Shown one piece after another: positions 7,903 through 64,000 of a stretch of 64,000 nucleotides of DNA (positions are counted from its first letter, which is position 1; every line of letters starts with the position of its first letter). Location of the stretch: assembly GCF_000143415.4 (NCBI RefSeq), contig NW_003314353.1:443559-507558 (forward strand), in the 5' to 3' direction. The DNA comes from Selaginella moellendorffii. Its lineage: Eukaryota; Plantae; Lycopodiophyta. The notes beneath the pieces were generated by a model. That model was not told the origin of the DNA. It worked only from the letters and a program-made list of their open reading frames with translations, and did not search any database. Made by a program: the position numbers and the translations under genes.

Positions 7903-8314
7903 GATTCCCTGCTAAGTGGAAGGGACCATATTTACAGTAAGTTGGACCACAAGTTTATAAGGTTCGGCATAACATCCAACAAGCTGATCCTCCAAAAATT
8001 GTGTAGCTAAAACGCTTCATAAAAAGGGATCAAGAACAACTAGCACCAGCTATAGATCCACCAATACCACATCCTAATGTTCCTCTAGATCTCGGCCTGT
8101 CCACAGGAAAACCATGATTGTCTTCCATCATTTCGAGAAAAGGGGATGATATGAGGTCCACGTGTATGGCTACAATGCTATATGTTAATATTAGTATAGT
8201 GGGATTTTGGTAACTGTTAGATTGGTTTCAATTCGGACCATTCACTCATGTATATAACCTATGGTTTTATGGCTAATTGATATGCATATTTCTGTATTCC
8301 ATTTCTATATTTCA

Positions 8315-8795
8315 TACACTCACACACACACACACACACATACATATTTTAGAAAAATACATAATACATATTTTCTTTCATGATTTTATTTAAAATAAGA
8401 TTTGTATATATGGAAATTATGGTTGCTTGCAAGTTCCCTGCTTAGTGGAAGGGACCATATGTATCAAACACATACATTTGTGATATGTATATATATATGT
8501 GTGTGTGTATATGTATATATATGTGTATATGTGTATGTGTGTATGTATGTATATGTATATATATACACCTTATAAACTTGCTGTCCAACTTACTTTAAAA
8601 GTTGTGTGTGTGTGTGTATGTATATATGTGTATATACTTATCGCCTGTGTATATATAAGATAGCGTAGGATATGCCCCCAACTACCCGGGATTACATCGA
8701 ACTAACTAGTGGCATAGTAGAATCTTTTAAAGCCTAGACTGCAAGTTTAGGATCCCAATCAAATACCAAATTGTATATATATATATATACATGTA
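8315..8795. repeat. Compound (CA)n/(TG)n/(TA)n microsatellite cluster
   Basis: Read directly from the sequence. Confidence 0.85.
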
Positions 8796-8799
8796 TGAC

Positions 8800-9990
8800 T
8801 TTTACCTAGGTAACATATAGACTGTACATATTTGGGATTAAATTTAGTCTTTCCCTTTTTATATATAAACAATATTTAAACCCTACCTATTTCTATATCC
8901 CAAAACACTCACATCAGAGGCATTACAATTTGGTAAAGCTTTTTGGCAATGCTTTACTAAGTGTTTAGGATTGTATTTTTTATTTTTATTTCTTCATTTT
9001 ATTTAAGATTTATATCTATGTTATCTTTTTACTAGATTTAGGATTGCATTTATTAAATTTATTCTTCCTTTTCAATTTCCATTATATTCTCTTTTTTACC
9101 ATACCACACGCAATATATTAGTGTGTTGTTGTCACCAACTTCCATATGATGTGATTATATAATGACTTATATTCTTGATGTCTTGTCATATGTTCAAGGA
9201 TCAAGCGTATGGGAAGACAATATGTATGACCTTGAGTGGATTTTGAATTATAATGAGAAATTTAATTATTATGGAAATAACTTTGGAGAGAAGTTGGAAG
9301 TTTTATAAAGTGTCAATCATTTAATCTCTCATTAGATTCTTTCTCTTTGCCTTCTACTTTTTCCCAGCATTTTCTTTTGTTTTTACCATTGCCACTCTTT
9401 AGATTTCTAGTGTTTTTTCCTCATCTACAATTTCATTTTCCTAGCATATTGATATTTGTGATTCTTATGATTCTCATTCTCAATCTAATATTGAGTTAAG
9501 TATTTTTTATACTTCTCATACTAATCTGGATGTTAAGTATGTATGTGAAGTTGAGAATCTTGCTTTTATTTCTTTGGCAAAATCTTTTATCAATTCTAAC
9601 TTTAAGTATAGTTAAGTCAATAGTTTTGGGTGTAAGTGCTATTGAGAGTATTTGTTTTACTGTTGTTGTTAAAGAGTTTATATATTCCTTTGAAAGTGTG
9701 AACTTTTCTATTAATTGTTTTATCTTAAGTGTTGATTTGTGTATTGAGGAGGTTGATGAATCTTTGAATCATTTTGTGGCGGCTAAAGTATTTTATAATA
9801 GCAAATACTTTATTTTCTTTTCTTTGAGTATATTTACTTTTTCATATTTCCCCACTTTTGCCTTAACAACTATTGAATATTCCTCTTTTCATACTTATTT
9901 TTCCACATTTTTTCTTTTACAGTATATTTTCCTTAATTTTTCTTCCTTTCTCATCTTTGCCCTGATATTTTTTTTTTCTTCATAAAAAGG
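8800..9990 (+). mobile_element. AT-rich old LTR-element fragment (LTR end near 8927 plus internal sequence)
   Basis: Homologous to 49590-50100, 57960-58830 and 62600-62750 (e.g. TTTGGGATTAAATxTAGTCT; TGTTCAAGGAT...TATGGGAAGACAAT); ...ATTACA ATTTGGT LTR/PBS-like junction. Confidence 0.7.
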
Positions 9991-11499
9991 GTAAAGATGA
10001 TGAATGTCTAAAAACATTATCATTTTGAGAAAGTTTACATTAAATATTTATGATTCATAAATATAAATATTTATGATTTATAATTATAAACTTCTGTTAG
10101 CTACTATGCTTTATAAGTGTCTAAGAAACTATTGAAAATCAATCTATAATATATATTTCTCTCTATATTAAAAACATTTATTAAATATTATTTTAATTTT
10201 AATTTTATTAAGAAATAGATTTTAAGTTAGATTTATTTTTATATTTATCTATCTATTTTTGAGTTTATTAGTATTTAATTTTAATGTATTCCCATTATCT
10301 TTGTATGTTTTGTTCTAATATTTCAAAACTAAATCAATTTATTTAATTTTATATTTATATATTTATAAATATATTTTTACTAAATTGTATCTTTCTTTAT
10401 AATATTTAAGACATTGCCTAATTTAAAAGTGAGTGCCAACAGTTGATCATTAAGTTATGTAAAAACAAAGATGATGGCCATTATTACATAAATTTATTGA
10501 TATAATTTATTTAATTTGGTTTTATTGATGAAAAAAGCATTTAGTTTGTATTTATATAGAAAAATAAATTTGTTTTACCATAAACTATATCTATTAATTA
10601 AATATTAAAATATAGTTGATAAATACTTTGAAGGTTCTCTTATGTATTTTTTTAAGATTCAATATTATTTTTAATTTTTTTAAAAAATAGAGAAACTTTT
10701 AATTTAGTTATTAAAGTTTTTTATTAATTAGTTGACAAAAGAGTTGATACCACCTACACAACTCTTTGGAGTTAAATTTGTATTTTCATTTTGCTAAAGT
10801 ACATTTTAGTGGTGATGCCAAAAACAATAGAAGATACATTTAATACCAAAATTTTAAATCATCCAAATATTATAAACATTCAATCATAGCATTAGATGTA
10901 GATCATAAATTTAAAGTAAAAATAATTACTAATAATTTTAATCATAAATTAAAGAATTAAAAATATATTTAAATAAAATAATTTTTAAAGATATTAGTGA
11001 CTTGAAACAACCAAAAATTTAAAGAAAATATATTACAATATATTTCTAATATATTTCTCATTTAATAGTACTAAAAAATATTCTACTTAAATTTTTTTAT
11101 CATTTTTAAAACATTAGTTAAGTTATAGGTTTGCTCTGGTATTCAAATAATTTAATGGAATATACTAAAATATTTTTCTGCTCTACCAACTCTCCACATG
11201 CCCAAAAACAAGTGAGCAAGGGTATGGAACTATAAAAGTCACTTTGCTAAGCAGAGTGTGTATAATAATCAGGTGATGTCTTGGATGTTGACACTATGAG
11301 GCACTCTTAGATTGGTTAGTGTTGAGGTTTTGCAGTGCATTGCCATTGATAGATTCGACTTGCTTGCCAATAAACGATAGAGAATTGTAGATTAATCCTG
11401 TATAGAAGCTTGAGTTTTCATAAGAAAAGAAAGACCCGCATTTGCACAGGTAACTCATGGCTTCAGGCCGACCTGATGCTAAGCTCTTCTCCTTCGGAT

Positions 11500-11930
11500 T
11501 GGCGGGAGAGATTTATCACCTAGGAAGCAATGCAAAAGGAGATGTTCTTCACTTCAGGAAACCCCCTCTACTTTCTCTATAGGGATTCTGCCCACTTGGA
11601 AGTTGCCATGATCCCAAGGATACCAAGTTCTACATGGATTTCATGAACTTTGCGATGATAAACTCAAGAGCTTGGCAGGCTGCTTCCATGGATCTGTGGA
11701 GGAGAACCTCCAGCTGTTTAGAAGGATGCTCAAGGAGTGTGTCAAGCTGGACTACGTTCTTTCCTTTTTCTTTGTTTGTTCCATATCTTGTTTTTTCAGG
11801 GATGGGCAAAGAGGTGATTAGAGGATTCATATGAGAAGATCATGAGATGTAGAGTGACTTCCATAGCCACGAGCTTCACACCTCAAAGTTCCACCATCAG
11901 CAGCAGCACGGGAATGCGTTGGAATTAAAT
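11500..11930 (-). pseudogene. Possible F-box-associated domain gene fragment
   Basis: ADGG...NPL..SLP spacing resembles plant F-box-associated repeats; frameshifted. Weak. Confidence 0.25.
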
Positions 11931-12087
11931 GAAGCTCTACTTGTCGCTTCAAGTTGACGCATGTAGTAAGTTTATACTAATTATCTCTAATTTGCAAAGC
12001 AATTTTATAACACAAGCACTTCTCAATATCAAATGAATTATTTTGTGATGATCCAATGAAACCATGAAATAATAGACTCTAACTTGC

Positions 12088-12242
12088 TTAGTTCTTGATG
12101 CAGAGGTCCTTGCTCCATTTCCAGTCAAACTGGCATTGGTGGCACTTGTTGTTGTACGAGTACCAATTGCTCGAGCAACTCATGCACTTGCTTCCACTCC
12201 ACTTCCATCTGGAGAGGCATTGGTGGCAATTGTTACTATACT
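12088..12242 (-). pseudogene. 3' half of a secreted Cys/Trp-repeat peptide gene split by the Gypsy element
   Basis: *YSNNCHQCLSRWKWSGSKCMSCSSNWYSYNNKCHQCQFDWKWSKDLCIKN*; in frame with 20458-20620 once the element and one TSD copy are removed. Confidence 0.8.
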
Positions 12243-12247
12243 AGTAT

Positions 12248-12480
12248 TGTTATGATCTGGTGCAAAAAGATAGAGATCTAGTCTTCTTAGACTACACTAC
12301 ACCTCCTCTTGAGATTCCTCACCACCCAACCACCCCCGAGCTACCTCAAAAGCTCCACTGCGCCGCTGCTCCACTGTGAGCCTTAAGGTAGGTTTAATCC
12401 CTTACCCTAACATGCCTTAATATACCCTTGAGCCTCCCTTTGACCAATGTTGACCACATGGTCAAAGCTGGTGCCTAACA
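12248..12480 (-). repeat. 3' LTR of the Gypsy element
   Basis: Direct repeat of 20234-20457; adjacent PPT. Confidence 0.93.
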
Positions 12481-13160
12481 AGTCTTCCTCCCCAACAAAG
12501 TCCTTATCCCAAGGACAAATTGTACCAGTGATCACCCTTTTTAGGGAACCCTACTCAAACTCTTAGTCCATCTTCCACAGCCGTATACATCAAGGAGGCC
12601 TTGGGCCTATCACTTCGAGATAATACACCTTTCAACTAGTTGATATAAAATACCAGATGAATTTTCACCCTAGCTAGCAGCCGCACCCAATAAGCTACTT
12701 TACCAATGCGCTCCAACACTTCATATGGACCAGCATATCGATGGGAAAGTATATTACTCTTCCCTATTCGTAAAGGCACTAAGGTGTTCCACCGCTCACT
12801 TGATAGAAAGATCACTCGCACGAAGACAAAATCACCCACCTTATATTCCCAGAATTGGCAATGCTCATTAGCAAACTTCTTCGCTCTATCTTGAGTTGCT
12901 TGCAAATTTTGTTTACACACCACCAAAATTTTATCAAGTTCTGTGGCTAGATCAGTTGCATCACAATCAAGCTTATCTTGAATGTCCTTACTCAAATGCA
13001 ATCCCAACTCCACTACTGTTCGAGGATGCCTTCCAAACATGGCAAAGTAAGGATTTAGCTTGGTTCCACTATGTTGGCTATTGTTGTAAGAAAATTACAC
13101 TAACAGAATATATAAATCCCACTGTCCTTACATTTGACCAACACTACAACATAGCATATC

Positions 13161-13354
13161 TGTAAGCAACCAAAGAGAACGACTCAAGAGATGATCCATG
13201 AGGTTCAAATATAAAGGGAAAGGGCCTATGAATAAAAGTGCACCCCCTTTTCCAATCGGTTAAGGGTCTTGGGATACTTAGGGTTAAATGTCTTTGGGTT
13301 TGAATAGTACTGGGTTGAGTGACCTCCCGGGAAGTCCAAACTCAAGAGCTTACA
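13161..13354 (+). mobile_element. Cassandra-like solo LTR carrying a 5S rRNA-derived segment (~13282-13337)
   Basis: TGTAAGC...GCTTACA termini; perfect TSD ATATC (13156-13160 / 13355-13359); GGTTAAATGTCTTTGGGTTTGAATAGTACTGGGTTGAGTGACCTCCCGGGAAGTCC resembles the plant 5S internal control region. Confidence 0.88.
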
Positions 13355-14108
13355 ATATCCTCCACTACCTGATTCACACGCTAGGTTTGCCCATCCATCT
13401 GAGGATGATCTCCATTTGAAAGTTTCAAAATCACTTGCATAACCTTCATAAAGCTCTTCCAAAATCCATTTATGAACTTTGAATCTTAATCACTTATGAT
13501 GTCTTTTGGCAAACCAAAATCAAAAAAAACCTTCTCCAAGTAGATTGCAGCCAAGTCTAAGGCAATGACAGTCTTCTGAAGAGCCAATAACTGCACATAC
13601 TTCATCAACTGATCCACTATGACTCATACTTGCTCTTTTTACCTCTGTATTCATAGCAAACAAGTGACGAAGTCCATAGAAATATTACACCAACAGCTTT
13701 GAGGAATAGGTAAAGGTTGCAAAAGTCCCCTCGGCTTCTCCTGTGGCACTTTAACCCGCTGATAGAGCTCACATGATTTACAATACTCGAGGATATTAGC
13801 CTTCATATTCCTCCAATTAAAATTGCACTTAATCAACTCATATTTCTTCTTCCCCCCAAAATGACTAGCCTTTGGACGATCATGATAGTGGAATAAAACT
13901 TGAGTAATTAACGCATCCACCTGTGGCAAATAAACATGGCCATTGTAGTAAAGAATCCCATCCACCAATGAGAAAGGGGCAAAGGGGTCAAAAAAGCAAA
14001 AGTTCTTTGTGAAGAATTATAAAAAAAACCCTACAATCAAGTGATCACTCCTTTAGCCAATTGGCTTAGAGTGTAAGGGATAGGATTTTAGCATTTCTTT
14101 GATACCAA

Positions 14109-14381
14109 TGTTAGGATCTTATCCCTTACACCCTAAGCCAACTGACTAAAGGGGTGATCACTTTATTGTAGAGCCCTTTCTTTATCCTATTATTCTGACC
14201 TGATGCCTAACAATCCTCCCCTTCTTAAGGAATGATTGTCTGTGATCATACTTAGGTCACCCTTTGGTCATCATGGTCCTTCTCTTAGGGTCTACCAAAT
14301 CTTGGTTCTCCCTCTAGAATCACCATGTTGGATATTCCTTCAAAATATTCCTACCTCATTTGTTAGCCATGAGAGTCGAAC
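14109..14381 (-). mobile_element. TRIM-like unit: 104-bp LTR (14109-14212), PPT and internal domain
   Basis: Inverted copy at 16826-17097; PBS TTGGTATCAAAG on the minus strand at 14097-14108; PPT GGGGAGGAT adjacent to the LTR. Confidence 0.8.
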
Positions 14382-14582
14382 TTTGAATCCCATGGAGCAA
14401 TGCTATTCCACATATGAGCAAAAGTTACTCTTTATTGTTCATGCTTTATGGACGTGGCGGCATTATCTTTATGGTGTAATGTTCGTGGTGTTGAAGGATC
14501 ACAAACCACTTGTGTATCTTTTCACACAAAAGGAGTTGAACACTAAGCAAGCTCATTGGATGGTCAACCTCATGAAGTTTGG

Positions 14583-15172
14583 TGTAACGCACCCTATATC
14601 TCTCCCCTTAAGCGAATTGGAAAAGGGGCAATTGCTTGATAAGAAAGCCCTTAGTGGCTATTTTATCCCCATTTATCCCCCAAGGTTCCAAGGATCCATG
14701 GTGACAGTATATCTAAATCTCATCTTATAATCACATACGCTATACTCACCCCCCTTTTAGAGATGTTAATGTCCTCATTAACTATTGACTAACAACCCTT
14801 ACTGAGCCAAAGGGAACCAGCACCTCCATTTCCGCACTGAATCTATCAATCCTTCCATTGTGTAGACTAACTATTCCATGTGAGGGAACTAATCATCCAC
14901 CCATACCGCAGTCCCACGGTGGATACCTTTGTCCATGGATGTTCCACCAAGAGGAAGGACATACGCATGGATGCCCAATACATACGATTTCAAGTTTAAG
15001 GGTAGGAATATATCTTGCTCAGGGGTATATTATATTTTTAAGTAGCCACTAATCAATGGGAATCAAACCCGTGCCATTTGCTTCGATACCACATATTGCG
15101 CACCCTATCTAGGTTCTAAGGATCCACGGTGATAATATATCTAAACCTCATCCCATGATCACATGCGCTACA
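14583..15172 (-). mobile_element. TRIM (590 bp), second family
   Basis: Perfect TSD TTTGG (14578-14582 / 15173-15177); LTRs 14583-14744 and ~15094-15172 (internally deleted); PBS TGGTATCGAAGC at 15080-15091 on the minus strand; PPT AAAGGGGGGTGAG. Confidence 0.88.
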
Positions 15173-15828
15173 TTTGGGGAGTTTCCTATTGAGCATTATC
15201 CGGGAAAATCAAATGTGGTGGCGAATGTTTTATCATGTGTTTGTCATGTGACGTCATTACAAACACAGTTTGTCATCATTTGAGTAAAGTGGTCAGTGAG
15301 TTTGAGCAGTTGGTTAAGCATGCTCAGGCTCAGGATACTGAAGTGGCCTCTTTGCAAGACCAAATGGAAGCCCCTTTCTCATTGGTGGATGGGATTCTCT
15401 ACTACAATGGTTGTGTATATTTGCCACAAGTGGATATGTTAATTACTCAAATTTTATTCCACTACCATGATCATCTAGAGGCCGGTCATTTTGGGGGGAA
15501 AAAGACATATGAGTTGATTAAGTGCAATTTTAATTGAAGGAATATAAAAGCTGATATCCTCGAGTATTGTAAATCATGTGAGCTCTGTCAGCGGGTTAAA
15601 GTGCCACAGGAGAAGCCGGGGGGACTTCTGCAACCTTTACCTATTCCTCAAAGCCATTGGTGTAGTATCTCTATGGACTTCATCACTTGTTTGCCACGAA
15701 CACAGAGGCAAAAGAAGCAAGTATGGGTTATAATAGATTGGTTGATAAAGTATGTGTAGTTATTAGCTTTTCAGAAGACTGTCATTGCCTCAAACTTGGC
15801 TATAGTCTACTGGAGAAGGTTTTTCCTG

Positions 15829-15928
15829 NNNNNNNNNNNNNNNNNNNNNNNNNNNNNNNNNNNNNNNNNNNNNNNNNNNNNNNNNNNNNNNNNNNNNNNN
15901 NNNNNNNNNNNNNNNNNNNNNNNNNNNN
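15829..15928. other. Assembly gap (100 N)
   Basis: Run of N. Confidence 1.
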
Positions 15929-16809
15929 GCAAAATTAAGTGTGTAAATCAGTGGGTGGAGGATATGCCATGTTATAGCATGGTTAAAGGCAAGGACAGTG
16001 GGATTTATATTTTCCAATGGTGCAATTTGCTTACAACGATAGCCAATACAGTGGAACCAAGCTAAGTCCTTACTGTGCCATGTTTAGAAGGCATCCCCAA
16101 ACAGCAGTGGAGTTGGGATTGCATTTGAGTAAGGAAGTTCAAGATAAGCTTGATTCTGAGGCAATTGATCTGGCCATAGAACTTGATAAGATTCTAGTGG
16201 TGTGCAAACGGAATTTGCAGGTAGCTTAGGATAGAGCAGAGAAGTTTGCTAATGAGCGTCGCCAATTCCGGGAATATAAGGTGGGTGATCTCGTCTTTGT
16301 GCGAGTGATCGTTCCATCAATTGAGCGGCAGAACACCTTGGTGCCTTTACAGACAGGGAAGAGTGATAAACTTTCCCATCGATATGCTGGTCCATATGAA
16401 GTGTTGGAGCACATTGGTAAAGTGGCTTATCAAGTGCGGCTGCTAGCTGGGGTGAAAATTCATCTGGTATTTTATATCAACCAATTAAAAGGTGTACTAT
16501 CTCAGAGTGACGGGCCCAATGCCTCCTTAATGTATACGGTTATGGAATATGGACCAAGAGCTTGAGCAGGGTTCCCTAGAAAGGGTGATCACCAGTACAA
16601 TTTGTCCTTGGGACAAGGACTTTGTTGGGGGATATATTAAGGCATGTTAGGGTAAGGGACTTAACCTACCCTAGAGCTCACAGTGGAGCGGCGGCACAGT
16701 AGAGCTTTTGAGGTAGCTTGGGGGTGGTTGGGTGGTGAGGAACCTCAAAAGGAAGTATAGCATAGTCTAGGAAGACTAGATTTCTATCTTTTTGCACCGG
16801 ATTATAACA

Positions 16810-17097
16810 TTAGTATTGGAGCCTAGTTCGATTCTCATGGCTGACAAGTGGGGTAGGAATATTCTGAAGGAATATTCAACCTAGTGGATCTAGAGGGAGA
16901 ACCAAGATTTGGTAAACCCTAAGAGAAGGACCATGGTGACTAGAGGGTGGCCTAAGTATGATCACAGACGATCATTCCTTAACGAAGGAGGATTGTTAGG
17001 CATCAGGTCAGGATAATAGGATAAAGAAAGGGCCCTACAATAAAGTGATCACCCTTTTAACCAATTGGTTTAGGGTGTAAGAGACAGAATCCTAACA
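16810..17097 (+). mobile_element. TRIM internal domain (degenerate PBS to PPT) and 104-bp LTR (16994-17097)
   Basis: TTAGTATTGGAGC PBS-like motif directly after the Gypsy LTR copy; GAAGGAGGAT PPT; TGTTAGGCA...CCTAACA. Confidence 0.8.
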
Positions 17098-17146
17098 TTT
17101 CTCTGATACTAATGTTAGGATCCTATCCCTTACACCCTAAGCCAAC

Positions 17147-20100
17147 ATCCTAAAGCATCTTGAGTCTGAGCACACTCAACCAACTACCTAAACTTGCTGA
17201 CCACCTTACTCAAATGATGATAAAACTGTGTTTGTAACGTTGTCATATGACGAACACAAGATAAAGCATCTGCCACCACATTTGATTTTCTCGGATGATG
17301 CTCAATAAAAAAATTCCCCAAACATCATGAGTTTGACCATCCAATGAGTTTGCCTAATGTTCAACTCCTTCTGTGTGAAAAAGATACACAAGTGGTTTGT
17401 GATCTGTCAACACCACGAACACTGCACCATAAAGATAGTGCCACCATGTCCGCAAAGCATGAATAATAGAGAGTAACTCTTGCTCATATATGGAATAGTG
17501 TTATTCCATGAGATTCAAAGTTCAACTCTCATATGCAATAAGCTGCCCCTCTTGCATGAGAACTCCTCCCAGTGCATAACCACTCACATCACATGTCACC
17601 TCGTAAGGTTTCGATGGATCAGTAATGCGAAGCACTAGAGCCTTGCTCAACAATCGTTTCAGTGCCACAAAACTCTCCTCTTGTGGCTTCTTCCACTTAA
17701 ATGGCACATTCTTGCACAACAACTGTGTCAAAGGAATCGCCACCTCTGCAAACTTATGCTAGAAATGTTAGTAGTAACTAGCCATACCAAAAAAGCTGCA
17801 TAACTTGGCCACTGAAGTTGGTGTAGGCCAATTCTCCACCACAGCCACCTTCCTTGGATCTGTCTTGACACCTTTAGATGTCACAATATGGCCTAGATAT
17901 TCCACCTCCAACTTTGCAAATTCACATTTGCTCTTCTTCGCATAAAATTTGTTGTTACGGAGTAACAAAAGAACCTTGCGCAAATGCATTTTATGCTCCT
18001 CCATATTTTTGCTGAAAACAAGAATATCATCCAAGAAAATTTCCATAAATTCATAAAGATAATGCCTAAATACCTTTGTCATCAACCGAGTAAATGTGGC
18101 TGGTGCATTCATCAAACTAAACGGCATAACTATAAACTCAAAATGCCTGAAGCTTGTGTTGAATGCTATCTTAGAGATAGATGCAACATCAATCGCAATC
18201 TGATAATATTGACTCCTCAAATCAATCTTGGTAAACACTCATGCTTCACCAAGCTTGTTTAGGATATCATCCACACGTGGCATCGGCATTTTATCCTTCA
18301 TTGTCTTTTTGTTCAAGGCACAGTAGTCAATACACATCTGCATTGAACCGTCCTTCTTCCTCACAAGCAAGACTGGAGCACCAAATAGAGACTTACTTGG
18401 TTATATAAATCCAAACTCAAGTAACTCCTTGACTTGTCATTAAACTTTTTGCTCTTCCATATAACTTAACCGAAATAGATACTGGTAAATTGGCCGCGTC
18501 CCCGGCTCCAACATAATCCCATGCTCCACACCTCGTAATGGAACCCATGAAGAAGTTCAAATGGAAAAACATCAGAAAACTCGTTGAGTACATCCTATAC
18601 TACTGCTTCTCCCCCACACGTGTCTTGGTCCCCCAAGTCACAAATAAATAGCAAGTAACTTGAAAATGCTTTTCGATTACGACAAACCCGCTTCAAAGAT
18701 GTAGTAGAGAGCATAACAACTAGAGGTTGAACTCCCTCTCCAAACCACACATCTTTAACACCACCGTACTTTAACAAGACACGCTTAATACTTCACTTTA
18801 TCTCTAGATCCACCTTCACCAACCATAGCATCCCAAGAATGAAATCCACACAATGAATATCCATAAGATAAAAAGTCTCCATAAATGTGGTTTTGCCAAC
18901 CAACACTTCTAGCCCCTCAACACAAGCATCGAAATGCTAAATAGAAGTAGTTGCACCTTCCACTGTGTATAGAAGATCTCCTTGTGTGACCAGGCCATGC
19001 TCCGCAACAAACTTTGCCAAAACAAAGTTATCATCGCTCCCACTATCCAGTAAAATCCACATTGAACCGCCACGGAACATGCCCTCCAACTTTAAAGTTG
19101 ATTCACAAGTATCTTCAAACTCCATTTTATTCCACACACAATTAAGTTGATGAGCAACAATCGAAAGCTTTTTCCTCCAACCAGAATGGTCGTCCCCATC
19201 ATCCTCATGCTGCAAAGTTTGCAACTTTTTAGTATCTAACTTACCGTCAGTGCCATTTTTCTTGCCCTGCTGTTTGTTCTTCAGCTGTGGACAATTAGTC
19301 TTGTAGTGTCCAAGCTTGCCGCAATGATAACAACCCTGTCTATAATTCTTCACAAAGAACTTCTGCTTCTTGGACCCCTTTGCATCCGAAGTAGTCACCA
19401 TAGACTTCAACTTGTAGTGTTTGTTCCTATCCTTGTGTCCACGATGATCATCATGATGATTCTCGACAAAAGGACTCCACGAATGTTTGCAAGACTTGTG
19501 CTTATCATTGTCAAGTCGACGAACTGCATCAAAGAACTCCTCCATAGGCTGAGAATGACGCAAGTGTTGCCGCATGCTCTCACTATAAAGGCCATCAATG
19601 AAGTAGGATTTGTTCTTATCTGGATCCTTCGTTGGAACACAACTAATCAAGTAAGTAAACTTCTCAATATAGTCTCCGAGCATCCTTGCTAGAAATGTCG
19701 AAGTTTTGTGCTAGCATTCTCCACATCGTAGTGAGGGGAAAAACATAAATGGAAAGCAACCTCAAACTTATCCATGGTAAACACTGATGGTTTCTTATCC
19801 TCAACACGAGACTCCTCAAGTCAATTCCACCACCGAAGACTCATATCACTCAAAACCATTGGAATAGCCACTAAAGCCTCTACATCCGGAGTTCCCCTAG
19901 TAGCCAAGATCTTCTTCATATTGGCTAGCCAAGCAAGACACTTGTCCACACCACCATCACCGGAAAAGGTTGGAATCTTGAGTTGATCTACCAAGGAAGG
20001 CTTCACATCTAGCCTCAAGTGCCTTTAACACGCCCACACATGACATCCATCATGCCATGCATCTCGTCTTGCATCTCTTACTGATTTCGATTAAGGGATC

Positions 20101-20210
20101 GCAACTCGTAAACATCATCTTGAATGGTCAAAATCTCTGCAGCTCCATTGGCACCATCATCAGCACCACTATTGATAATAGGATTCCAGCCTTCAGCTTG
20201 GTCAGCCATC
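17147..20210 (-). pseudogene. Gypsy gag-pol (gag, zinc knuckle, protease, RT, RNase H), broken by stops and frameshifts
   Basis: ORF pieces 19821-20018, 18937-19683, 17768-18238 and 17522-17743 carry canonical motifs. Confidence 0.92.
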
Positions 20211-20233
20211 AAAACCTCCTCCTCTAATACTAA

Positions 20234-20457
20234 TGTTATGATCTGGTGCAAAAAAATAAAGATATAATCTTCTTAAACTATATTATGTCTCCTCTTAAGG
20301 TTCCTCACCACCCAACCACCCTTGAGCTACCTCAAAAGCTCTATTATGCCACCGCTCCACTGTGAGCCTTAAGGTTAAGTCCCTTACCCTAACATGCATT
20401 ACCCTTGAGCCTCCCTTTGACCGACGTTGACCACGTGGTCAAAGCTAGTGCCTAACA
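20234..20457 (-). repeat. 5' LTR of the Gypsy element
   Basis: Direct repeat of 12248-12480; followed on the minus strand by a degenerate PBS. Confidence 0.93.
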
Positions 20458-20620
20458 AATACCATCCTTTGGGACACTAGATGCACTTTTGGCTGTCCCA
20501 GTTCCATCCAAATATGCATTGCTTCTGGGCTGCTGCATTTGTGATGCCACCAACGTCCACTCCAACCAGGAGGATTGTCACAAACATGGTCAGAAGCATC
20601 AGCTGTGACTTGCTCACCAT
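20458..20620 (-). pseudogene. 5' half (signal peptide and first repeat) of the split Cys/Trp-repeat peptide gene
   Basis: MVSKSQLMLLTMFVTILLVGVDVGGITNAAAQKQCIFGWNWDSQKCI*CPKGWY. Confidence 0.8.
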
Positions 20621-21071
20621 GATCAATATCGTTTATCTAGAAATGTAAACTGATTTTTTTTCTTGTATCTCTTCTTTCACTTGAAATGCTTTACTGTGAT
20701 GCTGCCAGAGTGGTCTCGATTTAAAGTATGGAGGCCGAGTCCAAGTAAAGACTGCTATGCACACATAGTTTACTGCTTCTCCAGCGCAACATGTCGTGTT
20801 TGTGTTTGACTGACGGGGTCAATTGACTGGTGTTGATAATATTTTCCAAAGTTTGTGCATTGGATCTACACACACAATGTTGTGTCTTCCATTTCCCATG
20901 TTTATTTATCATTGTAAAAACTAAGGTCATGGATTAATATTGGTTAGAAATAATGTATCTCAAGGAATAACCATTTTAATTTACAAAGAAATTGTTTAAC
21001 TCCCCTTTTATCTAAACTTAGATTTGAACGGTTTAGATTATCTCTGCGAGTTTAGGGTTTTACACGTGGCT

Positions 21072-33784: not shown

Positions 33785-36700
33785 TGTAGGAATAATGATG
33801 AACACGACAAGCAGTCTGAATCGTGATCAGATCTCTGGTGATTTCTGATTTGATTGAAGTTGTATATATATACAGCCATAAATGAATCAATGTGTGTTGA
33901 AGTGAAATTCCGTTGTTCTTGCTCCGCTTTTCTTTCTTGGTATCGGAGCGCTGGTTTCTGAACTCTTTCTTCTCCTTTCTTTGTGCCTCACATCATGAGC
34001 TGCAGCAAAGTTGGATTGATCTTGCTTCAGGGAGTCACTGCCTTTGATGGGAGGAGAGGGTTCAACACTTGGTCCGAGAAAATGATGCGCGTGCTGCAGA
34101 TGGAAGAACTCTGGGAAATCGTTTCACCACCAACAATCACTGCAGATGCTCGTATGCGGCGAGCCCCTGCTGCGTTGGGAGCTTCAACTTCAGTGGAAGG
34201 AGAAGTCGTGGATGAAGAGGCAATTCGTGCCTCTGTTGCAGCAGCTCGACAACAGCTTGATCCAGGGGAACAAGCTGCGCTGGAGAAGAAGGAATCTCGA
34301 GCAAAAGGATTGATTCTTTCTAAGCTTGCAGATGCCCTTATGATGCATTTGCATCATAAGTGTGCTTGTGAGATCTGGGCTCATCTCCACAACAAGTATG
34401 CTGTTCTTTCCCTCTCCAAGATTAGCATGGTCGAGACTTGCATTCGTGAGACCCGTTTTCATCCAGGCGAGAACTTTGAAGAGTTCCTCGCCAAGATGCA
34501 AGATCTGTGGATGGAGCTTGAAGGCAGTCCAGCAGCGTTCAACGAAAGCAAGAAAGTTCTGGCACTTTGCGAGGCCATGCAAGATTCTTCTTTTAGTTCT
34601 TTCGTCCCTACCGTTCGCATGATGTCGCTCAACTTTGAACAAGCTGAGCAAACTTTACGCTCGGAGCTGGCTGCGAGAGGTTTGATTGTGGACTTTGATC
34701 AGAGGCCTTCCCATGTTTTGATCTCACAGTCTACATCAAATGCTTCTGCATCAAGCAATCAGTCAGGGACTGATTCAGCTCTGTGGGCTGGAAATCATCG
34801 AGGCAGAGGAGGCCGCGGAAGAGGAGGACGAGGCAGAGGTCGCGGGTTTAGGGGAAATCCGCAGCAGCAGCAGAATTCAGGGAATTCTGGTAAAGAAGTA
34901 GTAGTTCGGGATTGTTTTGTGGGCAAGAACAAACAGGAATGCTGGACCTGTGGGATGCCAGGGCACTACTCCAAGGATTGCCCAGTTGCAGCTTGGCTGC
35001 AGCGCATGAACATAGGGCTTGTAGCAAATGCTCAGGAAGGGGAAACACAGGAACTTGCGGCATCATCTGAGGTAGCAGTTCCAAACGTTTCTGAAAAACT
35101 GACTATCGATTCAGGTTCAGAGAGACACCTGATGCAAAGCGGGTCGAACTTTGTGCAGTTGCGTGCTGCAAAAGGGAAGTGCATTCGTGTGGGAGATGGA
35201 AGCATTTTACCTGTTCGCGCAACTGGGGATGTGCGAGTTCCACTGGGAAGAAAGTCTCTGCTCTTGAAGAATGCGTGGTATGTTCCAAAGATAGTGAAGA
35301 ATCTGGTTTCTGTAGCCAGGCTTACGGATGAAGGTCTGGATGTGAATTTCTCCAAACATCAATGTCAAGTTCTTGCAAATGGCCGTCCATTACTGCATTT
35401 TCCCAGATGTGGTAACCTGTTTGAGAAGGAGATAGCTTCTGGAGAAAAATCGAATGCTCCTGAGATATGCATGACTGCAGATAGTTCTCTCTGGCATTCT
35501 CGACTTGCACATGCCAATCCCCCTCTCATCAGGCGTATGCAGAAGCAAGAGCTTGTGGATGGCTTCAACGACCACGTTCTTCAAAGTTCAGCAAAATGTC
35601 ACACTTGCATTCTTGGCAAGCAAACCCGTCGTACTTTCAAACCTGCTGTGACCAGAAGCACTCGTCCCTTGCAGCTCATTCACTCAGATGTTTGTGGACC
35701 CATGCGACTGTTTGCTCAGAATGGCACGAAGTATTTTGTGACATTTACAGATGATTTCTCCAGGCACACGGACGTCTTCTTTCTTCGTCACAAAGATGAA
35801 GTCTTTAGCAAATTCAAGCAATTCGTAGTAGAAGCCGAAGTGAAAACTGGTTAGAGGGTTGGTTGTTTACGTACTGATTCAGGAGGGGAATACGTCAACA
35901 AGTCCTTTCAGCAGTTCTGTGCTGAACGAGGAATTCTTCATCAGCGCTCTTGCTCTCATACCCCTCAACAGAATGGAGTCTCTGAGCGCAAGAATAGGAC
36001 AATCATGAACGCAGTTCGGTGCTTCCTTCAAGAATCAGGACTACCAAAATTCCTCTGGGCTGAAGCAGTTGGATCAGCTATGCATGTTCAAAACCTTCTC
36101 CCTCATTCTCGCAATCCCAACAAGATCCCAGAAGAGCTTTGGACTGGTCAAAGACAATTGGTGGTGCATCTCAGGCATTTTGGTTGTTTAAGCTTTGCAA
36201 AAAGGGTGGATGAGCATCTTGGCAAGTTGGAGAGCAGAAGCAAGCTGGCCTTTCTTGTTGGATACGATTCCAATTCAAAAGGATATCGCCTGTACCAGCC
36301 TGGTAATCATCAAATCTTTGTAAGCACTGATGTTCGTTTTGATGAAGGAACACTCTACAAAGATCATGTTCAAGAAGAAGGAAGCTCAGATCAGAACATG
36401 AACTGGACTCCGGAAGAATGGAGTTGGGATGGTGTTGAAGACGGTGATGAAGATGACGATGATCTGACAATCATCTATCCCTCATCTCCTTTAGCAGATG
36501 ATCATCCAACACTAGTCTCTGGATCTTTTCTTCCTGAAGAACAGGGCGATGCTACTCATCGTGCACGAACTGGAGAAGTCGACAGGCTCACACGTGATCT
36601 ACCATTCAATGTGGAGAACTATGGGCAGACATCATCTGGACGATCAGGCAGAGCACCTCATCCCAAGAAATGGTCTTTTGCAGCAACAGAAATAGCTTCT

Positions 36701-38427
36701 GAACCAGTCAACTTTGAGCAGGCGATTCAAGCTCCTGATGCAGATAAGTGGATTTCAGCAATGCAAGATGAGTTGAATTCTCTTGATGAGAACCAGACTT
36801 ATGACTTGGTGGAAGCTCCTGAAGGACGTGAAGTTGTTGGATCACGCTGGGTGTTCAAGCTTCACAGAAATCCTGATGGATCAGTACAGCGTTACAAAGC
36901 AAGACTTGTTGCTCAAGGATATTCACAAGTTCCTGGAGTGGATTTTGATGAGACGTTCTCACCAATTGTGAAGCAGACAAGTATCAGAATGCTTCTGTCT
37001 TTTACAGCGGAGTTTGGTTTGTGCGCACATCACATGGACGTAAAAACAGCCTTCCTTAATGGGAACTTGAAGGAGGAGATATTTATGCGGCAACCCCCAG
37101 GCTTTGAGCTTTTTGGATCACGGTGCTCCGAACTCGTCTGCAAGCTTCGCAAGGCTCTTTATGTCCTTAAGCAGGCTTCCCGTTAGTGGTATGAATGTTT
37201 GGATTCTTTTCTTATGGATCTCGGTATGCAGAGGTTGAACAGCGATGGAAATCTATATCTTCTTCAGCAGGGTGATCACTTTGTTGTGATAGCAGTTTAT
37301 GTGGACGACTGTTTGATTGTCAGCAACAATCACACTGTTTTGAAGGATGTGAAGATCAAGCTTATGAACAGGTTTGTGATGAAGGACTTAGGAGCTGTGC
37401 GGCAGCTGTTAGGGATGGAAGTTGACAGGGATGAAGCAGACAGGACAATCACCCTCACACAGTGCCAATATGTGAAGAAGCTTCTCAACCAGTTCAACAT
37501 GACAAGTTGCAAATCCGTGGCTACACCAGTCGTCACTGGCATCAAGTTCACAAGCAAGATGGATGATTTATTTGATCAGCCCTCGGTCTATCGATCGCTT
37601 GTTGGAGGACTACTCTACCTCGCCAACATGACTCGCCCTGACATCTCCTTTGCCGTTGGTCTCCTCAGCCGATACATGCAGTCTCCGAGTTGTTATCATT
37701 GGCAGATGGTGAAGAGAGTTTTGAGGTATTTGAAAGGAACAGCTGCTCATGGATTGGTTTACAAATGCTCAGGTCAATCCAAACTTGTTCTTCAAGCTTA
37801 CTGCGATGCAGATTGGGCTGGCAACTTGGATACACGACATTCAACCTCCGGAATTTGCTGCATAATTGCTGGTGCTCCAGTTTCATGGGGAAGCAAGAAG
37901 CAAACAACGGTTGCTCTTTCCAGTGCAGAAGCAGAATACGTAGCTGCCAGTACAGCAGCAAGGGAGATCATCTGGCTTCGTCGATTACTTGGAGAACTCA
38001 ATCAACAGCAATCAGATGCGACCATTCTGCATTGCGACAGCAGAAGTGCAATCGCCATGTCAAAGAATCCTGTGTTTCATGCTCGTACGAAACATATAGA
38101 CGTGCAGCATCACTTCATTCGCGAACATGTAGCAGCCGGAGATCTTCACCTGGAATACGTTCCTTCACAGTATCAGTTGGCGGACCTTCTAACCAAGCCA
38201 CTTTCGGAGCTCACATTCATCAAGCTGAGGAATCAACTTGGAGTGTCAAGCACACCCTCAGCTTGAAGGGGGAGTGTAGGAATAATGATGAACACGACAA
38301 GCAGTCCGAATCGTGATCAGATCTCTGGTGATTTCTGATTTGATTGAAGTTGTATATATATACAGCCATAAATGAATCAATGTGTGTTGAAGTGAAATTC
38401 CGTTGTTCTTGCTCCGCTTTTCTTTCT
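33785..38427 (+). mobile_element. Young Ty1/Copia LTR retrotransposon (4643 bp) with TG..CT termini
   Basis: 153-bp LTRs 33785-33937 and 38275-38427 (one mismatch); TSD CATGC; PBS TGGTATCGGAGC 33938-33949; PPT GAAGGGGGAG. Confidence 0.97.
33995..38266 (+). pseudogene. Copia gag-pol polyprotein in a single frame with two premature TAG codons
   Basis: CWTCGMPGHYSKDC, IDSGS, WHSRLAH..CHTC, IHSDVCGP, MDVKTAFLNG, YVDD, YCDADWAG, KHID; TAG at 35852-35854 and 37184-37186. Confidence 0.95.
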
Positions 38428-49768: not shown

Positions 49769-50415
49769 ATAATAACTAATATAATACTATAACATATAGA
49801 TTGTTCATTTGGGATTAAATCTAGTCTATCCATCCTTGTATATAAGCAAAGATTTAAACCCCAATTAATATATCTATTTTTATATCCTAGTCACTCACAT
49901 TGGTGGAAAGAGGTATTACAATTTGTCCCTAAAAGTAAAGTTTTTTGACACTGTTTTGCTCTAGTGGTTAGGATCATGTTTTTTGTTCTTATTTCTTTAT
50001 TATCTTTTAGATCTAGATATATTAGCTTTTTGCAAGATTTAGAACTCTAACTATCATTGTGCTTAGATCTACTCTTTTATGCCACACCATTATCAATTAA
50101 AAAGTATGTAACTTGAAATGTTATTTTGTTAGATTGAACTTTTGGTATTATGGGGTGTGATCATACTAATACTACACCCATCCTTTTGTGAGACACAAAA
50201 TCCCTAGGCCCCAAAGTGGAGCCGGAAGGGCGCCACATGGTAGTGGCCGAAGCGAGAGCCAAACGAGCGTAACACGTTTGGACCAAAAGCTCCGACTTGA
50301 GAAGTCAAGAGCGGGAGTGGAACTCCCAATGAAGTGCTCGAGGAATGAGCACGAAGCGAGCAAAAGGCAAGGCTCCAAAAAGGGACCCAAAAGGACCAAC
50401 ACATGACACGTGGGA

Positions 50416-50884
50416 GTGTCCGAGATGGACTCGAGTTGGAGTCCGAAGTGGAGTCCGAGATGGACCCGAGATGGAGTCCGAGATGGAGTCCAAAGTGGAG
50501 TCCGAGGTGGATCCGAGATGGAGTCCAAAGTGGAGTCCGAAGTGGAGTCCGAGATGGACCCGAGTTGGAGTCCGAAGTGGAGTCCGAGATGGACCCGAGT
50601 TGGAGTCCGAAGTGGAGTCCGAGATGGACCCGAGATGGAGTCCGAGATGGAGTCCGAAGTGGAGTCCGAGGTGGACCCGAGATGGACCCGAGTTGGAGTC
50701 CGAAGTGGAGTCCGAGATGGACCCGAGATGGAGTCCGAGATGGAGTCCGAAGTGGAGTCCGAGTTGGACCCGAGATGGACCCGAGTTGGAGTCCGAAGTG
50801 GAGTCCGAGATGGACCCGAGATGGACCCGAGATGGAGTCCGAGATGGAGTTTGAGATGGAGTCCAAGATCGAGACCGAGACCGG

Positions 50885-50916
<32 letters not shown>

Positions 50917-51032
50917 TCGGAACCGAGACCGAGACCGAGGCCGAGGCCGAGACCGAGCCCGAGCCCGAGTCCGAGTCCGAATCCGAGTCCGAGTCCGAGT
51001 CCGAGTCCGAGTCCGAGTCCGAGTCCGAGTCC
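50416..51032 (+). repeat. GC-rich minisatellite in the 5' LTR (11/12-bp GATGGA(GT/C)CCGA units, then (GACCGA)n and (GTCCGA)n)
   Basis: Read directly from the sequence; copy in the 3' LTR at ~56359-56927. Confidence 0.97.
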
Positions 51033-54000
51033 GGAGCCTGAGAGGGTGAAAGCCCAAAGCGTTCGTCTCCCAGACCCTGGGGGGTTTGGTGAGCTCCAAA
51101 AGTATAGTAGGGGGGAGGACTGCAGTGGAGCCAGTTTGGCCAGGAAAGGCCAGTTTGGCCCAGGAAGGCTGGACCCAGTGTTGGGTGAGGAGCTGCCCAC
51201 TGGGAAGTCCAAGACTAGAGTGAACACAGACCGACAAGTGGGGTAGCTTGGTGAAGTGTTCAAGAGCCGGCTCTAGTTCCCCCGGGAGATCGACTGGCTG
51301 ATGCTCCCAGTCCAAGTGTGGGTGGCACTACCTACTTGGATACCTGTTGTGGCTCAACGGAACCTCGCTCTAAGCCCATGGCTAGAGCACCTAAAGGCGA
51401 AAGGCGAGGAGAGTACCCAGGTGGCTTGCGTAAGGCCACGGTGTTCCGAAATGTTGTCCCAAAGGCCCAGACTGTGGAGAGGAAGAGGCGCAGTCCTCTG
51501 GGGTAGTGACCAAGGACACAGTCGTGTGGTGAGGAAGTCCCAGAGGACCGTGGGACTTAGTGGTCGGGCCTGTGGGTCTCGATCCAGTGGCAGTGTTGGC
51601 AAACACGGCCAGGGGCAGAAAGGGACTTAGTGGGGACTGACAGAGGGATATTGGGGAAGGCTATTCCCCTTGTCGGTGGGCATCCTAAGGATGCTAAGGA
51701 GTGGATCTGAGATGACCACTCACGGATGGTTTGCTTAGTCTTGGAGAGCCAAGACTGTGATGCAAGTGGTAGTGGACTACCAGTGTGGCAAAGGTGATTG
51801 GGCATGGCCTTAGCGTAACGGGCTGCTATGTCGGTGGTACCTTTGAGTGTCGGTCATGGGATCGGACACGTGGAGCACTTGGACCAAGTGCAAATGTTGA
51901 GTGGCATGGATGCCATTCTCGGGGCTAGCAAGTCCCAAGTCCTGGATTGGACTTATGGAGGTTGTGAACGAGACTCCTCCAAGTGGTCGGAGGTGTGGTT
52001 AAGTGACTAAAGTAGAATGGAAAAATTAATCGCTTACAATTTGGTATCGGAGCTGTTCCTTAGTCCGACTTTTATTGGTGCTCAAGTATATCATCACTAG
52101 TGTTGGCATCGGAAGGTCCGAGGAGTGGGCCTATCCTTGAGGAGTAGCAAGTCGGGAAGACATGGCTCTCCATTACAGTTCATGTGTGAACTTGTAGACG
52201 AGGTGGTGGATAGAAAAGGGCCAATAATGGAACGACTTTGGGATCTTGGGAACAGTGCAAGGTTTTCCTCATTGAGTTGAGGATGTGATCCGGATGAGCA
52301 TTTGTCTCAGCAAATTGGCTAAGGTTGTTGTGGTAAACAACTAAAGCTGGGATCACGGGAAAGATAGAGACTCCAAAACAATAAAGGAGTCACAAGATTA
52401 TCCTCATATAGTTGAGGTTGGTGCTCATGAATGTGAGACCAGAGGTAATGACCGTGGGAGGTTAAATACGGAAGAGGACTCAAGTCCTTGAAATGGTAGC
52501 CGGGGCTACCTTTAATAAATGCTGGAACAACCCAAGGAGTTGGGGGGTGTACTTAGAGATGAGTGGTATTCTCATCGCATGGACAAGTAGTCCTAAGGGG
52601 CAAAAGTTGCCCCCAGAGAACAAAATCAAGTGTCGGAGTAACACTTGTGAAAATAGTCCTTTTGAGTAGGACAGGAATGCAGGAAGTGTATTCCAGTGAG
52701 CTAGTGCCTCACAAGTGGGACCTTCCGGGTCTGTGGATGAACCAAGTCCAAAACTGTTGGATGACTCAAGTAGAGTCAAGGAAAGGTCCTAAAAGGACTG
52801 ATTGAAGCATTTGGACTGAGGTGTGTTGTACCCCATGAAGGATGGGGGGGGGGATCATAGGATCCAAGGATGGGAACTGAGGGTATCTCATCGATGGCAA
52901 AATGTGCCATGCTAAAGTTATGGGAAAGGTGTTCCCAGAAGAAAACAACTTTGACACAAAGTTGTGTGTGACCTCTATGGTGCAGTGCTAACGGATGGTT
53001 GGCATGAGAAAGAGCGGGGTTGGTCTTGGCAAAGACTTAAACACGAAGGGGAAGTGTCATAGAGGTAGGCTCGTGGAGCCGATGGTGTGGAGACACCAAA
53101 TGTGCCAAGGTGTAATACCTTGAGGCTATGTTGGTGGGTTCATGAGAACCCCTTGCCAAAGGAATCCCAATGGAAATGGGAATGGCATAGCCTAAGCCGT
53201 AGAGCATGCAATTGGAGTGTGGTGACCCAGATAATGATGGAGGTATGAAAGCACCAAGCAATGAGTTGTAGGACTTGACAACTATGAGGCAACTAAGCAA
53301 GAGGTGCAAAATAACTGGCTAAACGGGTAGAGGGTAGCTACCCAAGACTTCTAGCATAGGGAAGTCAGATATACCCTTACGGGGGATAAGTTGCTTATGT
53401 TGCGATATAGTAAGTCAATGTCATAAAAGGAAATACTCATTGTCAAGAAAGCCATCATTGGGACACCCGAACACTCTAGAACACCAGAAGGTGGTGTTTA
53501 ATGTCGCGAGGGCAATGGATAAAGCCCAAGGGATTAAGTCCTTAGCGAATGATGGATAGAAGGTGCTATCCAAATGTCCAAGGTTGCGGAGACAGGAGAG
53601 GACTGTCTACCCAAGTTGGACAAAGCCAAAAATGGAATTTTGGCAAGGCTAGTGATGGGCATGTAAAGGCCCATAAGCAACAATGTAATCCCACTGTGTG
53701 GGATTATAAGATGAGCATACCCGGATTGAGGAACCACTCCCTGGGCTATTGGGTAGGTTCATCCCTAAGAATACTTGCTAAGGCATGATAGAAAGTGCAA
53801 AGCTATCCTCCTGGTCTGGAGGAGAATGACCAAAGGAAAGGTGTGAAGCCAAAAAGCAAGAAGTAAGGGGATAGAACCGAACCGTAGGAATCAAAGGGCA
53901 TAACCAAGGTTGGTTATGCCAGCTGGGAGTGGAGAATCAAGTGGGGGCTCGAGGGTGTTGCCGCTAGCAACCGTGATGCCATGGAGAGTCTAAAATATGG

Positions 54001-56358: not shown

Positions 56359-56791
56359 GTGTCCGAGATGGACTCGAGTTGGAGTCCGAAGTGGAGTCCG
56401 AGATGGACCCGAGATGGAGTCCGAGATGGAGTCCAAAGTGGAGTCCGAGGTGGATCCGAGATGGACCCGAGTTGGAGTCCGAAGTGGAGTCCGAGATGGA
56501 CCCGAGTTGGAGTCCGAAGTGGAGTCCGAGATGGACCCGAGATGGAGTCCGAGATGGAGTCCGAAGTGGAGTCCGAGGTGGACCCGAGATGGACCCGAGT
56601 TGGAGTCCGAAGTGGAGTCCGAGATAGACCCGAGATGGAGTCCGAGATGGAGTCCGAAGTGGAGTCCGAGTTGGACCCGAGATGGACCCGAGTTGGAGTC
56701 CGAAGTGGAGTCCGAGATGGACCCGAGATGGACCCGAGATGGAGTCCGAGATGGAGTCCGAGATGGAGTCCGAGATCGAGACCGAGACCGG

Positions 56792-56823
<32 letters not shown>

Positions 56824-56927
56824 TCGGAACCGAGACCGAGACCGAGGCCGAGGCCGAGACCGAGCCCGAGCCCGAGTCCGAATCCGAATCCGAGTCCGAG
56901 TCCGAGTCCGAGTCCGAGTCCGAGTCC
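56359..56927 (+). repeat. GC-rich minisatellite in the 3' LTR, 48 bp shorter than the 5' copy
   Basis: Read directly from the sequence. Confidence 0.97.

Positions 56928-63734: not shown

Positions 63735-64000
<266 letters not shown>

Follow-up and report, generated by a model that had tools for sequence, protein, structure and literature searches.

The window, as we call the whole 64-kb stretch of Selaginella moellendorffii DNA that was analysed, carries on its minus strand two parts of a small cysteine- and tryptophan-rich peptide frame, separated by a Ty3/Gypsy LTR retrotransposon. In the direction of the peptide frame, the features of the locus are the following.

20721 to 20727, minus strand: putative TATA-like box (TTTAAAT), some 100 nt before the ATG, read directly
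20480 to 20620, minus strand: first coding piece, 47 codons, with the ATG, a signal-type N-terminus and unit A1
20477 to 20479, minus strand: in-frame TAG in the linker after unit A1; the aligned site of unit A2 has a Ser codon
20459 to 20476, minus strand: first half of unit B1, six codons, severed by the insertion
12248 to 20457, minus strand: composite, degenerate Ty3/Gypsy LTR retrotransposon insertion
12241 to 12243, minus strand: second in-frame TAG; the aligned site of unit B2 has a Ser codon
12091 to 12240, minus strand: second coding piece, 50 codons, with the remainder of B1 and units A2, B2 and A3
12088 to 12090, minus strand: terminal TAA stop

When 12248-20457 and one copy of the target-site duplication were taken out, translation of the minus strand gave 54 codons (20620-20459), one junction codon and 50 codons (12240-12091), reproducing the single 105-codon frame that the first-pass annotation had described. 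The 54-codon piece comprises Met, the hydrophobic N-terminus, unit A1, a TAG and six residues of B1. The flanks joined directly are out of frame, and the frame comes back only when 5 nt are removed together with 12248-20457; unit B1 then has 13 residues (6 + 1 + 6), the same as B2. Once one duplication copy is deleted the junction codon, at the 12241-12243 site, is TAG too. Because the 105-codon reading thus contains two in-frame TAGs, which appear as asterisks in the first-pass annotation, we call it a frame and not an open reading frame, and because of the same two stops the gene is dead; a full-length product from this locus is impossible. The other reading frames at the locus are full of stops.

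Repeat architecture of the peptide frame

The N-terminus consists of one Lys, about 15 hydrophobic residues and then small ones leading up to the first Cys, and it was assigned as signal-type by eye from these n, h and c regions. It is followed by five units of the form C-x3-W-x-(W/Y)-x4-C, each 13-15 residues long, with two-residue linkers that connect them as CxxC. The units are ordered A(15)-B(13)-A-B-A in one frame, and both the five Cys/Trp units and the 28-residue higher-order period reported earlier are seen in it. In the DNA the 28-residue period shows as an 84-nt repeat (74% identity), and units A2 and A3, only 56% identical in DNA, retain every Cys and every Trp. The mature part (74 residues) contains 10 Cys and 8 Trp, and with 10 Lys and Arg to 3 Asp and Glu it has a net charge of +7. 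The start codon, likewise read directly, has A at -3 and G at +4.

A regular expression for the unit pattern, run on the six-frame translation of the whole 64 kb, matched four times, always at the peptide locus; composition-matched shuffles gave a mean of 0.58 matches per whole window. Four complete units and the one split unit share a single frame. Unit HMMs and tblastn against the 64-kb window detected no further copy, intact or decayed.

The inserted element

The inserted Ty3/Gypsy element is old. Its features, in element orientation and with the target-site duplication at either end, are as follows.

20458 to 20462: right copy of the target-site duplication, AATAC (plus strand)
20234 to 20457, minus strand: 5' LTR, 224 nt, TG..CA
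20222 to 20232: primer-binding site of tRNA-iMet type, just after the 5' LTR, matching at 9 of 12 positions
18940 to 19710, minus strand: gag zinc knuckle
17771 to 18238, minus strand: reverse transcriptase (RT)
13654 to 14016 and 12639 to 13094, minus strand: integrase
about 12482 to 12494, minus strand: polypurine tract, GGGGAGGAAGA, before the 3' LTR
12248 to 12480, minus strand: 3' LTR, 233 nt
12243 to 12247: left copy of the target-site duplication, AGTAT (plus strand)

On the minus strand the element domains run in the order zf-CCHC, RVT_1, Integrase_H2C2 and SH3_Tf2-1, with a Gypsy-type integrase. The two LTRs are 88% identical, differing by 24 transitions and 3 transversions (K2P 0.136). 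The target-site duplication is imperfect, as AGTAT and AATAC agree at 3 of 5 positions and both differences are transitions; a duplication length of 5 nt is needed independently, since exactly that length restores the host frame.

A Gypsy insertion of 8.2 kb had been proposed for this interval. A Ty3/Gypsy element does occupy 12248-20457, but it is not a single element: it is a composite that also contains a partial, inverted copy from that Gypsy family, and this copy holds an assembly gap.

14018 to 17155, plus strand: inverted partial copy, same Gypsy family, within the element
14236 to 14727, plus strand: RNase H of the inverted copy
15193 to 16562, plus strand: integrase of the inverted copy
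15829 to 15928: assembly gap, within the inverted copy's integrase
16630 to 16809, plus strand: third LTR, truncated, in the inverted copy

The two flanks of the gap are colinear with the other element copy (15370-15824 with 13980-13525, and 15961-16630 with 13160-12490), so by this alignment the true length of the gap is probably about 330 nt and not 100 nt. Because the gap lies within the retroelement, the peptide frame is untouched by it. Elsewhere in the window, a Copia open reading frame at 36005-37183 shows 39-55% identity to plant-type Copia proteins.

Searches for relatives

The two pieces of the frame were searched separately, and the structure model was built from the 50-residue piece. 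Pfam searches with each of the two pieces, listing matches down to E 10, returned sub-threshold noise only, no family coming near its cut-off; the best score was 14.1 bits, for the TNFR-like family PF23091, whose cut-off is 33.2, and the furin-like families PF00757 and PF15913 were absent from the listing at that E value. The models for defensin, thionin, hevein, snakin/GASA and LTP were likewise not among the matches at E up to 10, in agreement with the earlier remark that the peptide does not match the plant Cys-rich peptide families. A word-index search of proteins, which here covers lengths of 26-88 residues, gave no candidates for either piece.

With the 50-residue piece, phmmer against 1.84 billion representative sequences found only six proteins, all of them long, unnamed metagenomic CxxC-repeat proteins, one of which carries Furin-like_2 and VSP matches. 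What they have in common with the peptide is a motif of 15-17 residues that is repeated many times in them. We rejected these six as relatives, because the likeness comes down to a single CxxC-x3-W hairpin motif whose matches add up across their many repeats. In the ESM Atlas a furin-like cluster came first at 0.82, which is under the meaningful level, and the sequence search of solved structures (PDB) gave nothing below E 0.17.

AlphaFold run on the 50-residue piece without an alignment placed strands in a hairpin arrangement at low confidence (pLDDT 57.6). Foldseek with this model ranked R-spondin Fu1-Fu2 at the top with E 1.7 and TM 0.32, which is not significant, and a wide fold search with VIA found nothing above Z 2.5. 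Furin-like, TNFR-like and VSP repeats are the sole families to which any search pointed, and all of these leads are weak. In the literature, we found no paper describing such a peptide family. As far as tested, then, the peptide belongs to no described family, which bears out the suggestion of a possibly undescribed one: Pfam, the solved structures and the literature gave no match, and the phmmer matches are at the level of a motif.

Interpretation of the locus

We consider it highly probable that the locus is the pseudogene of a single-exon plant gene for a secretion-type peptide precursor of about 105 residues and five units, and that a Ty3/Gypsy element split it. The ancestral precursor, about 105 residues long, would have carried a cleavable signal peptide followed by the five C-x3-W-x-(W/Y)-x4-C units in A-B-A-B-A order. 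A Ty3/Gypsy LTR retrotransposon would have entered the second unit, B1, several million years ago, and this element may later have gained the inverted partial copy of itself or may have formed together with it. The ancestral product would have been secreted, with a separate disulfide in each unit probably closing it into a beta-hairpin that exposed Trp or Tyr. The resulting cationic ladder of five hairpins (net +7) may have bound an extracellular surface, either microbial membranes or the polysaccharides of cell walls or microbes. That a dead gene for a secretion-type Cys/Trp repeat peptide, split by a Gypsy element, lies here had been proposed from the first reading, and the two TAG codons together with the insertion support it.

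Other readings of the locus have to be weighed against this one. The locus might not be wholly dead if its upstream piece yielded a precursor of 47 residues with a single hairpin, ending at the first TAG. The segment 20620-20480 is indeed an intact open reading frame whose start codon stands in a good context and is preceded by the putative TATA-like box, but the word search of the protein collection found no candidate for this piece, and the locus is surrounded by decayed transposons; we regard such a residual gene as quite improbable. We see still less chance that the two flanks are remnants of separate, decayed tandem copies and not of one split gene. The imperfect target-site duplication would fit such an origin. 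Against it, the half-units complement each other exactly to the 13 residues of B2, exactly 5 nt restores the frame with the A-B-A-B-A order intact, and the unit HMM finds no additional copy in the window.

It is very unlikely, more so than either of these, that the repeats derive, as one exon or a fragment, from some larger repeat protein of furin-like, EGF-like or TNFR-like type, for example from a receptor ectodomain. The long CxxC-repeat proteins that make up the sole phmmer matches, and the weak leads from Pfam, the Atlas and Foldseek to furin-like or TNFR-like modules, do point in that direction. Against it, the frame opens with Met and a signal-type segment and meets a TAA directly after the fifth unit, no additional units occur across the 64 kb, the matches share just the one short, many times repeated motif, and no Pfam model reached its cut-off. 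Hardly credible, and the least probable of all, is a non-coding 84-nt tandem repeat that was never a gene and whose Cys/Trp reading is fortuitous. Such a repeat does exist at the DNA level, but Cys and Trp are kept while the rest diverges, as between A2 and A3, the Met and signal-type segment lie in the same frame as the repeats while stops fill the other frames, and shuffled sequences lack the unit pattern at such a density.

Beyond this locus, we give about an even chance to the wider proposal that the unit of this peptide marks out a class of secreted, cationic tryptophan-hairpin ladder peptides that has yet to be described. The class would consist of concatenated minimal hairpins of furin/EGF type, would perhaps be confined to lycophytes and undergo rapid birth and death, the present copy being one that a retrotransposon put an end to, and its role would lie in defence or in the binding of glycans. 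The value of a dead gene such as this one is that it is a dated member of a putative small-peptide family missed by gene annotation and by the protein databases, that it shows the five-hairpin A-B-A-B-A architecture, and that it records gene loss by retrotransposon insertion. If intact relatives are indeed secreted hairpin ladders binding microbes or polysaccharides, they would form a new scaffold of plant Cys-rich peptides in an early-diverging vascular plant, and the family would be useful for the study of the evolution of plant immunity and as a source of stable peptide frameworks.

Comparison with known systems

The nearest systems are the furin-like and growth-factor-receptor repeats (PF00757, PF15913; R-spondin Fu1-Fu2 and the CR domains of EGFR), grouped here with the related CxxC repeats of protist surface proteins (Giardia VSP, PF03302) and the TNFR-like modules (PF23091). 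Like this whole group, the peptide has CxxC linkers about 10 residues apart and loops that each carry an aromatic residue, in many cases following Gly; a ladder of beta-hairpins closed by disulfides is predicted for it as well. Because the unit resembles the disulfide-closed hairpins of furin-, TNFR- and EGF-like repeats, its scaffold is closer to familiar ones than the first-pass annotation implied. The peptide differs from this group in its units, which are strictly 13-15 residues long and bear the signature W-x-W or W-Y-x-Y, in what is presumably a single disulfide per unit, and in being a tiny stand-alone peptide of secretion type and not part of a large ectodomain. The resemblance, judged at the level of the motif, may be convergent.

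The N-terminal hairpin of long-form C-type lectins (snaclec 7qaj_B) shares the spacing of the B units, C-x3-W-x2-Y-x3-C, including the Pro and Gly of B1. Membership in the C-type lectins was rejected, since the likeness covers 12 residues only (E 0.17), the remainder of the domain of about 120 residues is missing and PF00059 is not matched.

Tachyplesin, protegrin and arenicin, which are disulfide-stapled cationic beta-hairpin antimicrobial peptides, and the Trp-rich antimicrobial peptides come from animals and form one hairpin each, held by two disulfides or by none. By analogy, the units of our peptide may be compared with the tachyplesin-type peptides as short, cationic, aromatic-rich and putatively disulfide-closed; the difference is that a single chain here strings together five hairpins, and we know of no sequence relation between the peptide and either tachyplesin, protegrin and arenicin or the Trp-rich antimicrobial peptides. 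Hevein, defensin, thionin, snakin/GASA and LTP are, like the predicted product, small, secreted, Cys-rich and probably extracellular binders or defence peptides, and hevein, too, uses exposed aromatic residues. From all of these plant families the peptide is set apart by another spacing of its cysteines and by its modular repeat of 14 residues.

Insertion of a retrotransposon into a Cys/Trp-repeat peptide gene

The first-pass annotation, which read the locus as a dead gene, is confirmed: a retrotransposon splits a pseudogene with two stops in its frame, whose product would have been a small, secreted peptide of Cys/Trp hairpin repeats. Its five repeat units, in the order A1, B1, A2, B2 and A3, are distributed over two minus-strand pieces.

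Peptide features (all minus strand)
20620: start codon ATG, followed in translation by a signal-type N-terminus and unit A1
after the signal-type N-terminus: unit A1, of the form Q-C-x3-W-x-W-x4-C
20477-20479: in-frame TAG stop after unit A1
up to 20459: first six residues of unit B1, after the TAG at 20477-20479
12240-12091: downstream piece, comprising the final six B1 residues followed by A2 (15 residues), B2 (13) and A3
12088-12090: terminal TAA, closing the downstream piece after A3

When the two flanks are joined directly, they are out of frame; excision of 12248-20457 together with five further bases yields a single frame of 54 + 1 + 50 = 105 codons. This excision gives B1 the 13-residue length of B2, and A plus B recur with a period of 28 residues, the DNA counterpart of which is an 84-nt repeat of 74% identity. 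The rescue of the frame, the length of B1 and the 84-nt repeat therefore bear out the earlier description of a split 105-codon frame. The two asterisks in its translation are likewise correct and represent two TAG stops, each at a linker or loop position occupied by Ser in the sister unit.

Could chance alone produce such an arrangement? When all six frames of the 64-kb window were scanned with a regular expression for the unit, it matched at the peptide locus four times and nowhere else (the fifth unit, B1, is split by the insertion and left out of this count), and shuffles preserving local composition gave a mean of 0.58 matches per whole window. The remaining two frames of the same strand contain stops throughout. 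A2 and A3 share only 56% DNA identity and retain all Cys and Trp, as would be expected if the scaffold had formerly been under selection. Unit HMMs and tblastn detected no second copy, intact or decayed, within the window.

The insertion is a composite Ty3/Gypsy element

The split had been attributed to one 8.2-kb Gypsy insertion. The LTR pair and Gypsy domains are indeed present, but the insertion is not a single element, since it is a composite within which, at about 14018-17155, the same family recurs as an incomplete copy on the plus strand. This copy shows 87-89% complementarity to the integrase and LTR of the minus strand (12248-13980).

Features of the insertion
12248-12480 and 20234-20457: LTRs with TG..CA ends
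14236-14727, plus strand: RNase H of the inverted copy
15193-16562, plus strand: integrase of the inverted copy
16630-16809, plus strand: truncated third LTR of the inverted copy

In the minus orientation, a tRNA-iMet-type primer-binding site follows the 20234-side LTR (9 of 12 positions match, read by eye, and two of the three mismatches are transitions), and a polypurine tract precedes the 12480-side LTR. On the minus strand, the Pfam matches succeed one another as zinc knuckle, RVT_1, Integrase_H2C2 and SH3_Tf2-1, the arrangement of Ty3/Gypsy elements. The target-site duplication, AGTAT versus AATAC (three of five identical, two transitions), is weak evidence taken alone, and the host frame independently requires 5 nt. 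Alignment of the LTR pair gave 24 transitions, 3 transversions and 9 gap columns, that is, a K2P distance of 0.136; at 1.3e-8 per site per year, a rate often used for plant LTRs but uncalibrated for this lineage, the insertion would be about 5 million years old.

The inverted copy could have originated by nested insertion with deletion, by recombination or as an assembly artefact around the gap at 15829-15928. A segment of about 330 nt is repeated in inverted orientation at 14051-14382 and 16825-17155, bounding the inverted copy, and a small palindrome lies at 14018-14184. The gap flanks are colinear with the uninterrupted copy (15370-15824 with 13980-13525; 15961-16630 with 13160-12490), so that order and orientation are preserved from one side to the other. 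Across the gap, 364 nt of the reference copy stand against only 36 real bases and 100 N, so that by this alignment its true length is probably about 330 nt rather than the nominal 100. The reading frame across the gap is moot because the inverted copy is full of stops. The gap is irrelevant to the peptide frame; it lies within the retroelement, with about 3.6 kb and 4.5 kb separating it from the two peptide flanks.

Other features of the window

A Ty1/Copia element at 33983-38266 (plus strand) has long ORFs and has decayed much less than the Gypsy element. Its first ORF (623 aa) contains gag, a beta-barrel domain and the integrase start, followed by ORFs with SH3 and RVT_2 (393 aa) and the rest of RVT_2 (355 aa); the closest database proteins, of plant-type Copia, are only 39-55% identical (query ORF 36005-37183), in keeping with a plant source. 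At 50172-51315 and 56067-57210, 5895 nt apart, both strands carry overlapping long ORFs in two nearly identical sets, each with a 363-aa minus-strand ORF. The one ORF searched from these sets, 50175-51263, had no Pfam match, and the sets are probably the LTRs of a large non-autonomous element, annotated earlier as a LARD. A further 100-N gap lies at 2855-2954. GC content is 0.29 at 8001-12000, a stretch that adjoins the peptide pseudogene at its 3' end, and 0.31 at 60001-64000, versus 0.38-0.48 elsewhere.

Proposed product

The ancestral precursor would have carried a signal peptide, in which the small residues near positions 25 and 31 are each plausibly followed by a cleavage site. The mature part, about 74 residues long, has a net charge of +7 and includes 10 Cys, 8 Trp and 4 Tyr. 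In the simplest pairing, a disulfide within each unit (C to C+11) would give five stapled hairpins with two-residue linkers and exposed Trp/Tyr. Such a cationic, aromatic-rich, rigid ladder would most plausibly target microbial membranes or cell-wall/microbial polysaccharides. The full product is impossible to make at this locus; at most, the upstream piece might yield a 47-residue precursor with a single hairpin. The dead copy itself is of modest interest, and the family merits study through intact members.

Relation to known families and folds

The two stop-free pieces, each alone rather than as the joined 105-codon reading, were used for database searches. No Pfam model came near threshold for either piece, the best being PF23091, the TNFR-like module of ELAPOR1 (14.1 bits versus a cut-off of 33.2). 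A word-index protein search, covering proteins of 26-88 residues, gave no candidates for either piece. With the 50-residue piece as query, a full phmmer run over 1.84 billion representatives returned six matches, all long (477-1784 residues); five were looked up, and these are unnamed proteins deposited in ENA or JGI/IMG collections. Cysteine-repeat families appear among the Pfam matches of two (one with Furin-like_2 and VSP, the other with a marginal laminin EGF); the remainder have other domains or none. The best match shares one common hairpin motif, CxxC then Q-x-D-W and a closing Cys, in 16 repeats, with a pairwise score of only 27 bits. The top ESM Atlas cluster was furin-like (score 0.82), the PDB sequence search gave no match below E 0.17, and the VIA wide search gave no match.

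AlphaFold without an alignment arranged the strands as hairpins (pLDDT 57.6), and Foldseek found no significant match to this model, its weak top rows including R-spondin Fu1-Fu2, TNFR ectodomains and C-type lectins. A full-text literature search, a limited negative, found no account of such a peptide family, and together with the Pfam result this agrees with the first-pass view that the peptide possibly belongs to an undescribed family. By sequence comparison, the peptide appears to belong to no family among those searched.

Taken as leads rather than tests, the Pfam, phmmer, Atlas, PDB and fold results agree on a disulfide-closed aromatic beta-hairpin as the building block. The peptide falls outside described families, although its cysteine-rich hairpins are of a well-known type. 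The B units, at 12139-12177 and 20459-20476, have a lectin-like spacing at the motif level only: long-form C-type lectins, the top PDB row, carry an N-terminal disulfide hairpin spaced in the same way, C-P-x-G-W-x2-Y-x3-C. By the leads taken together, the peptide units would be disulfide-closed hairpins of the type found in furin-like, TNFR-like and EGF-like modules.
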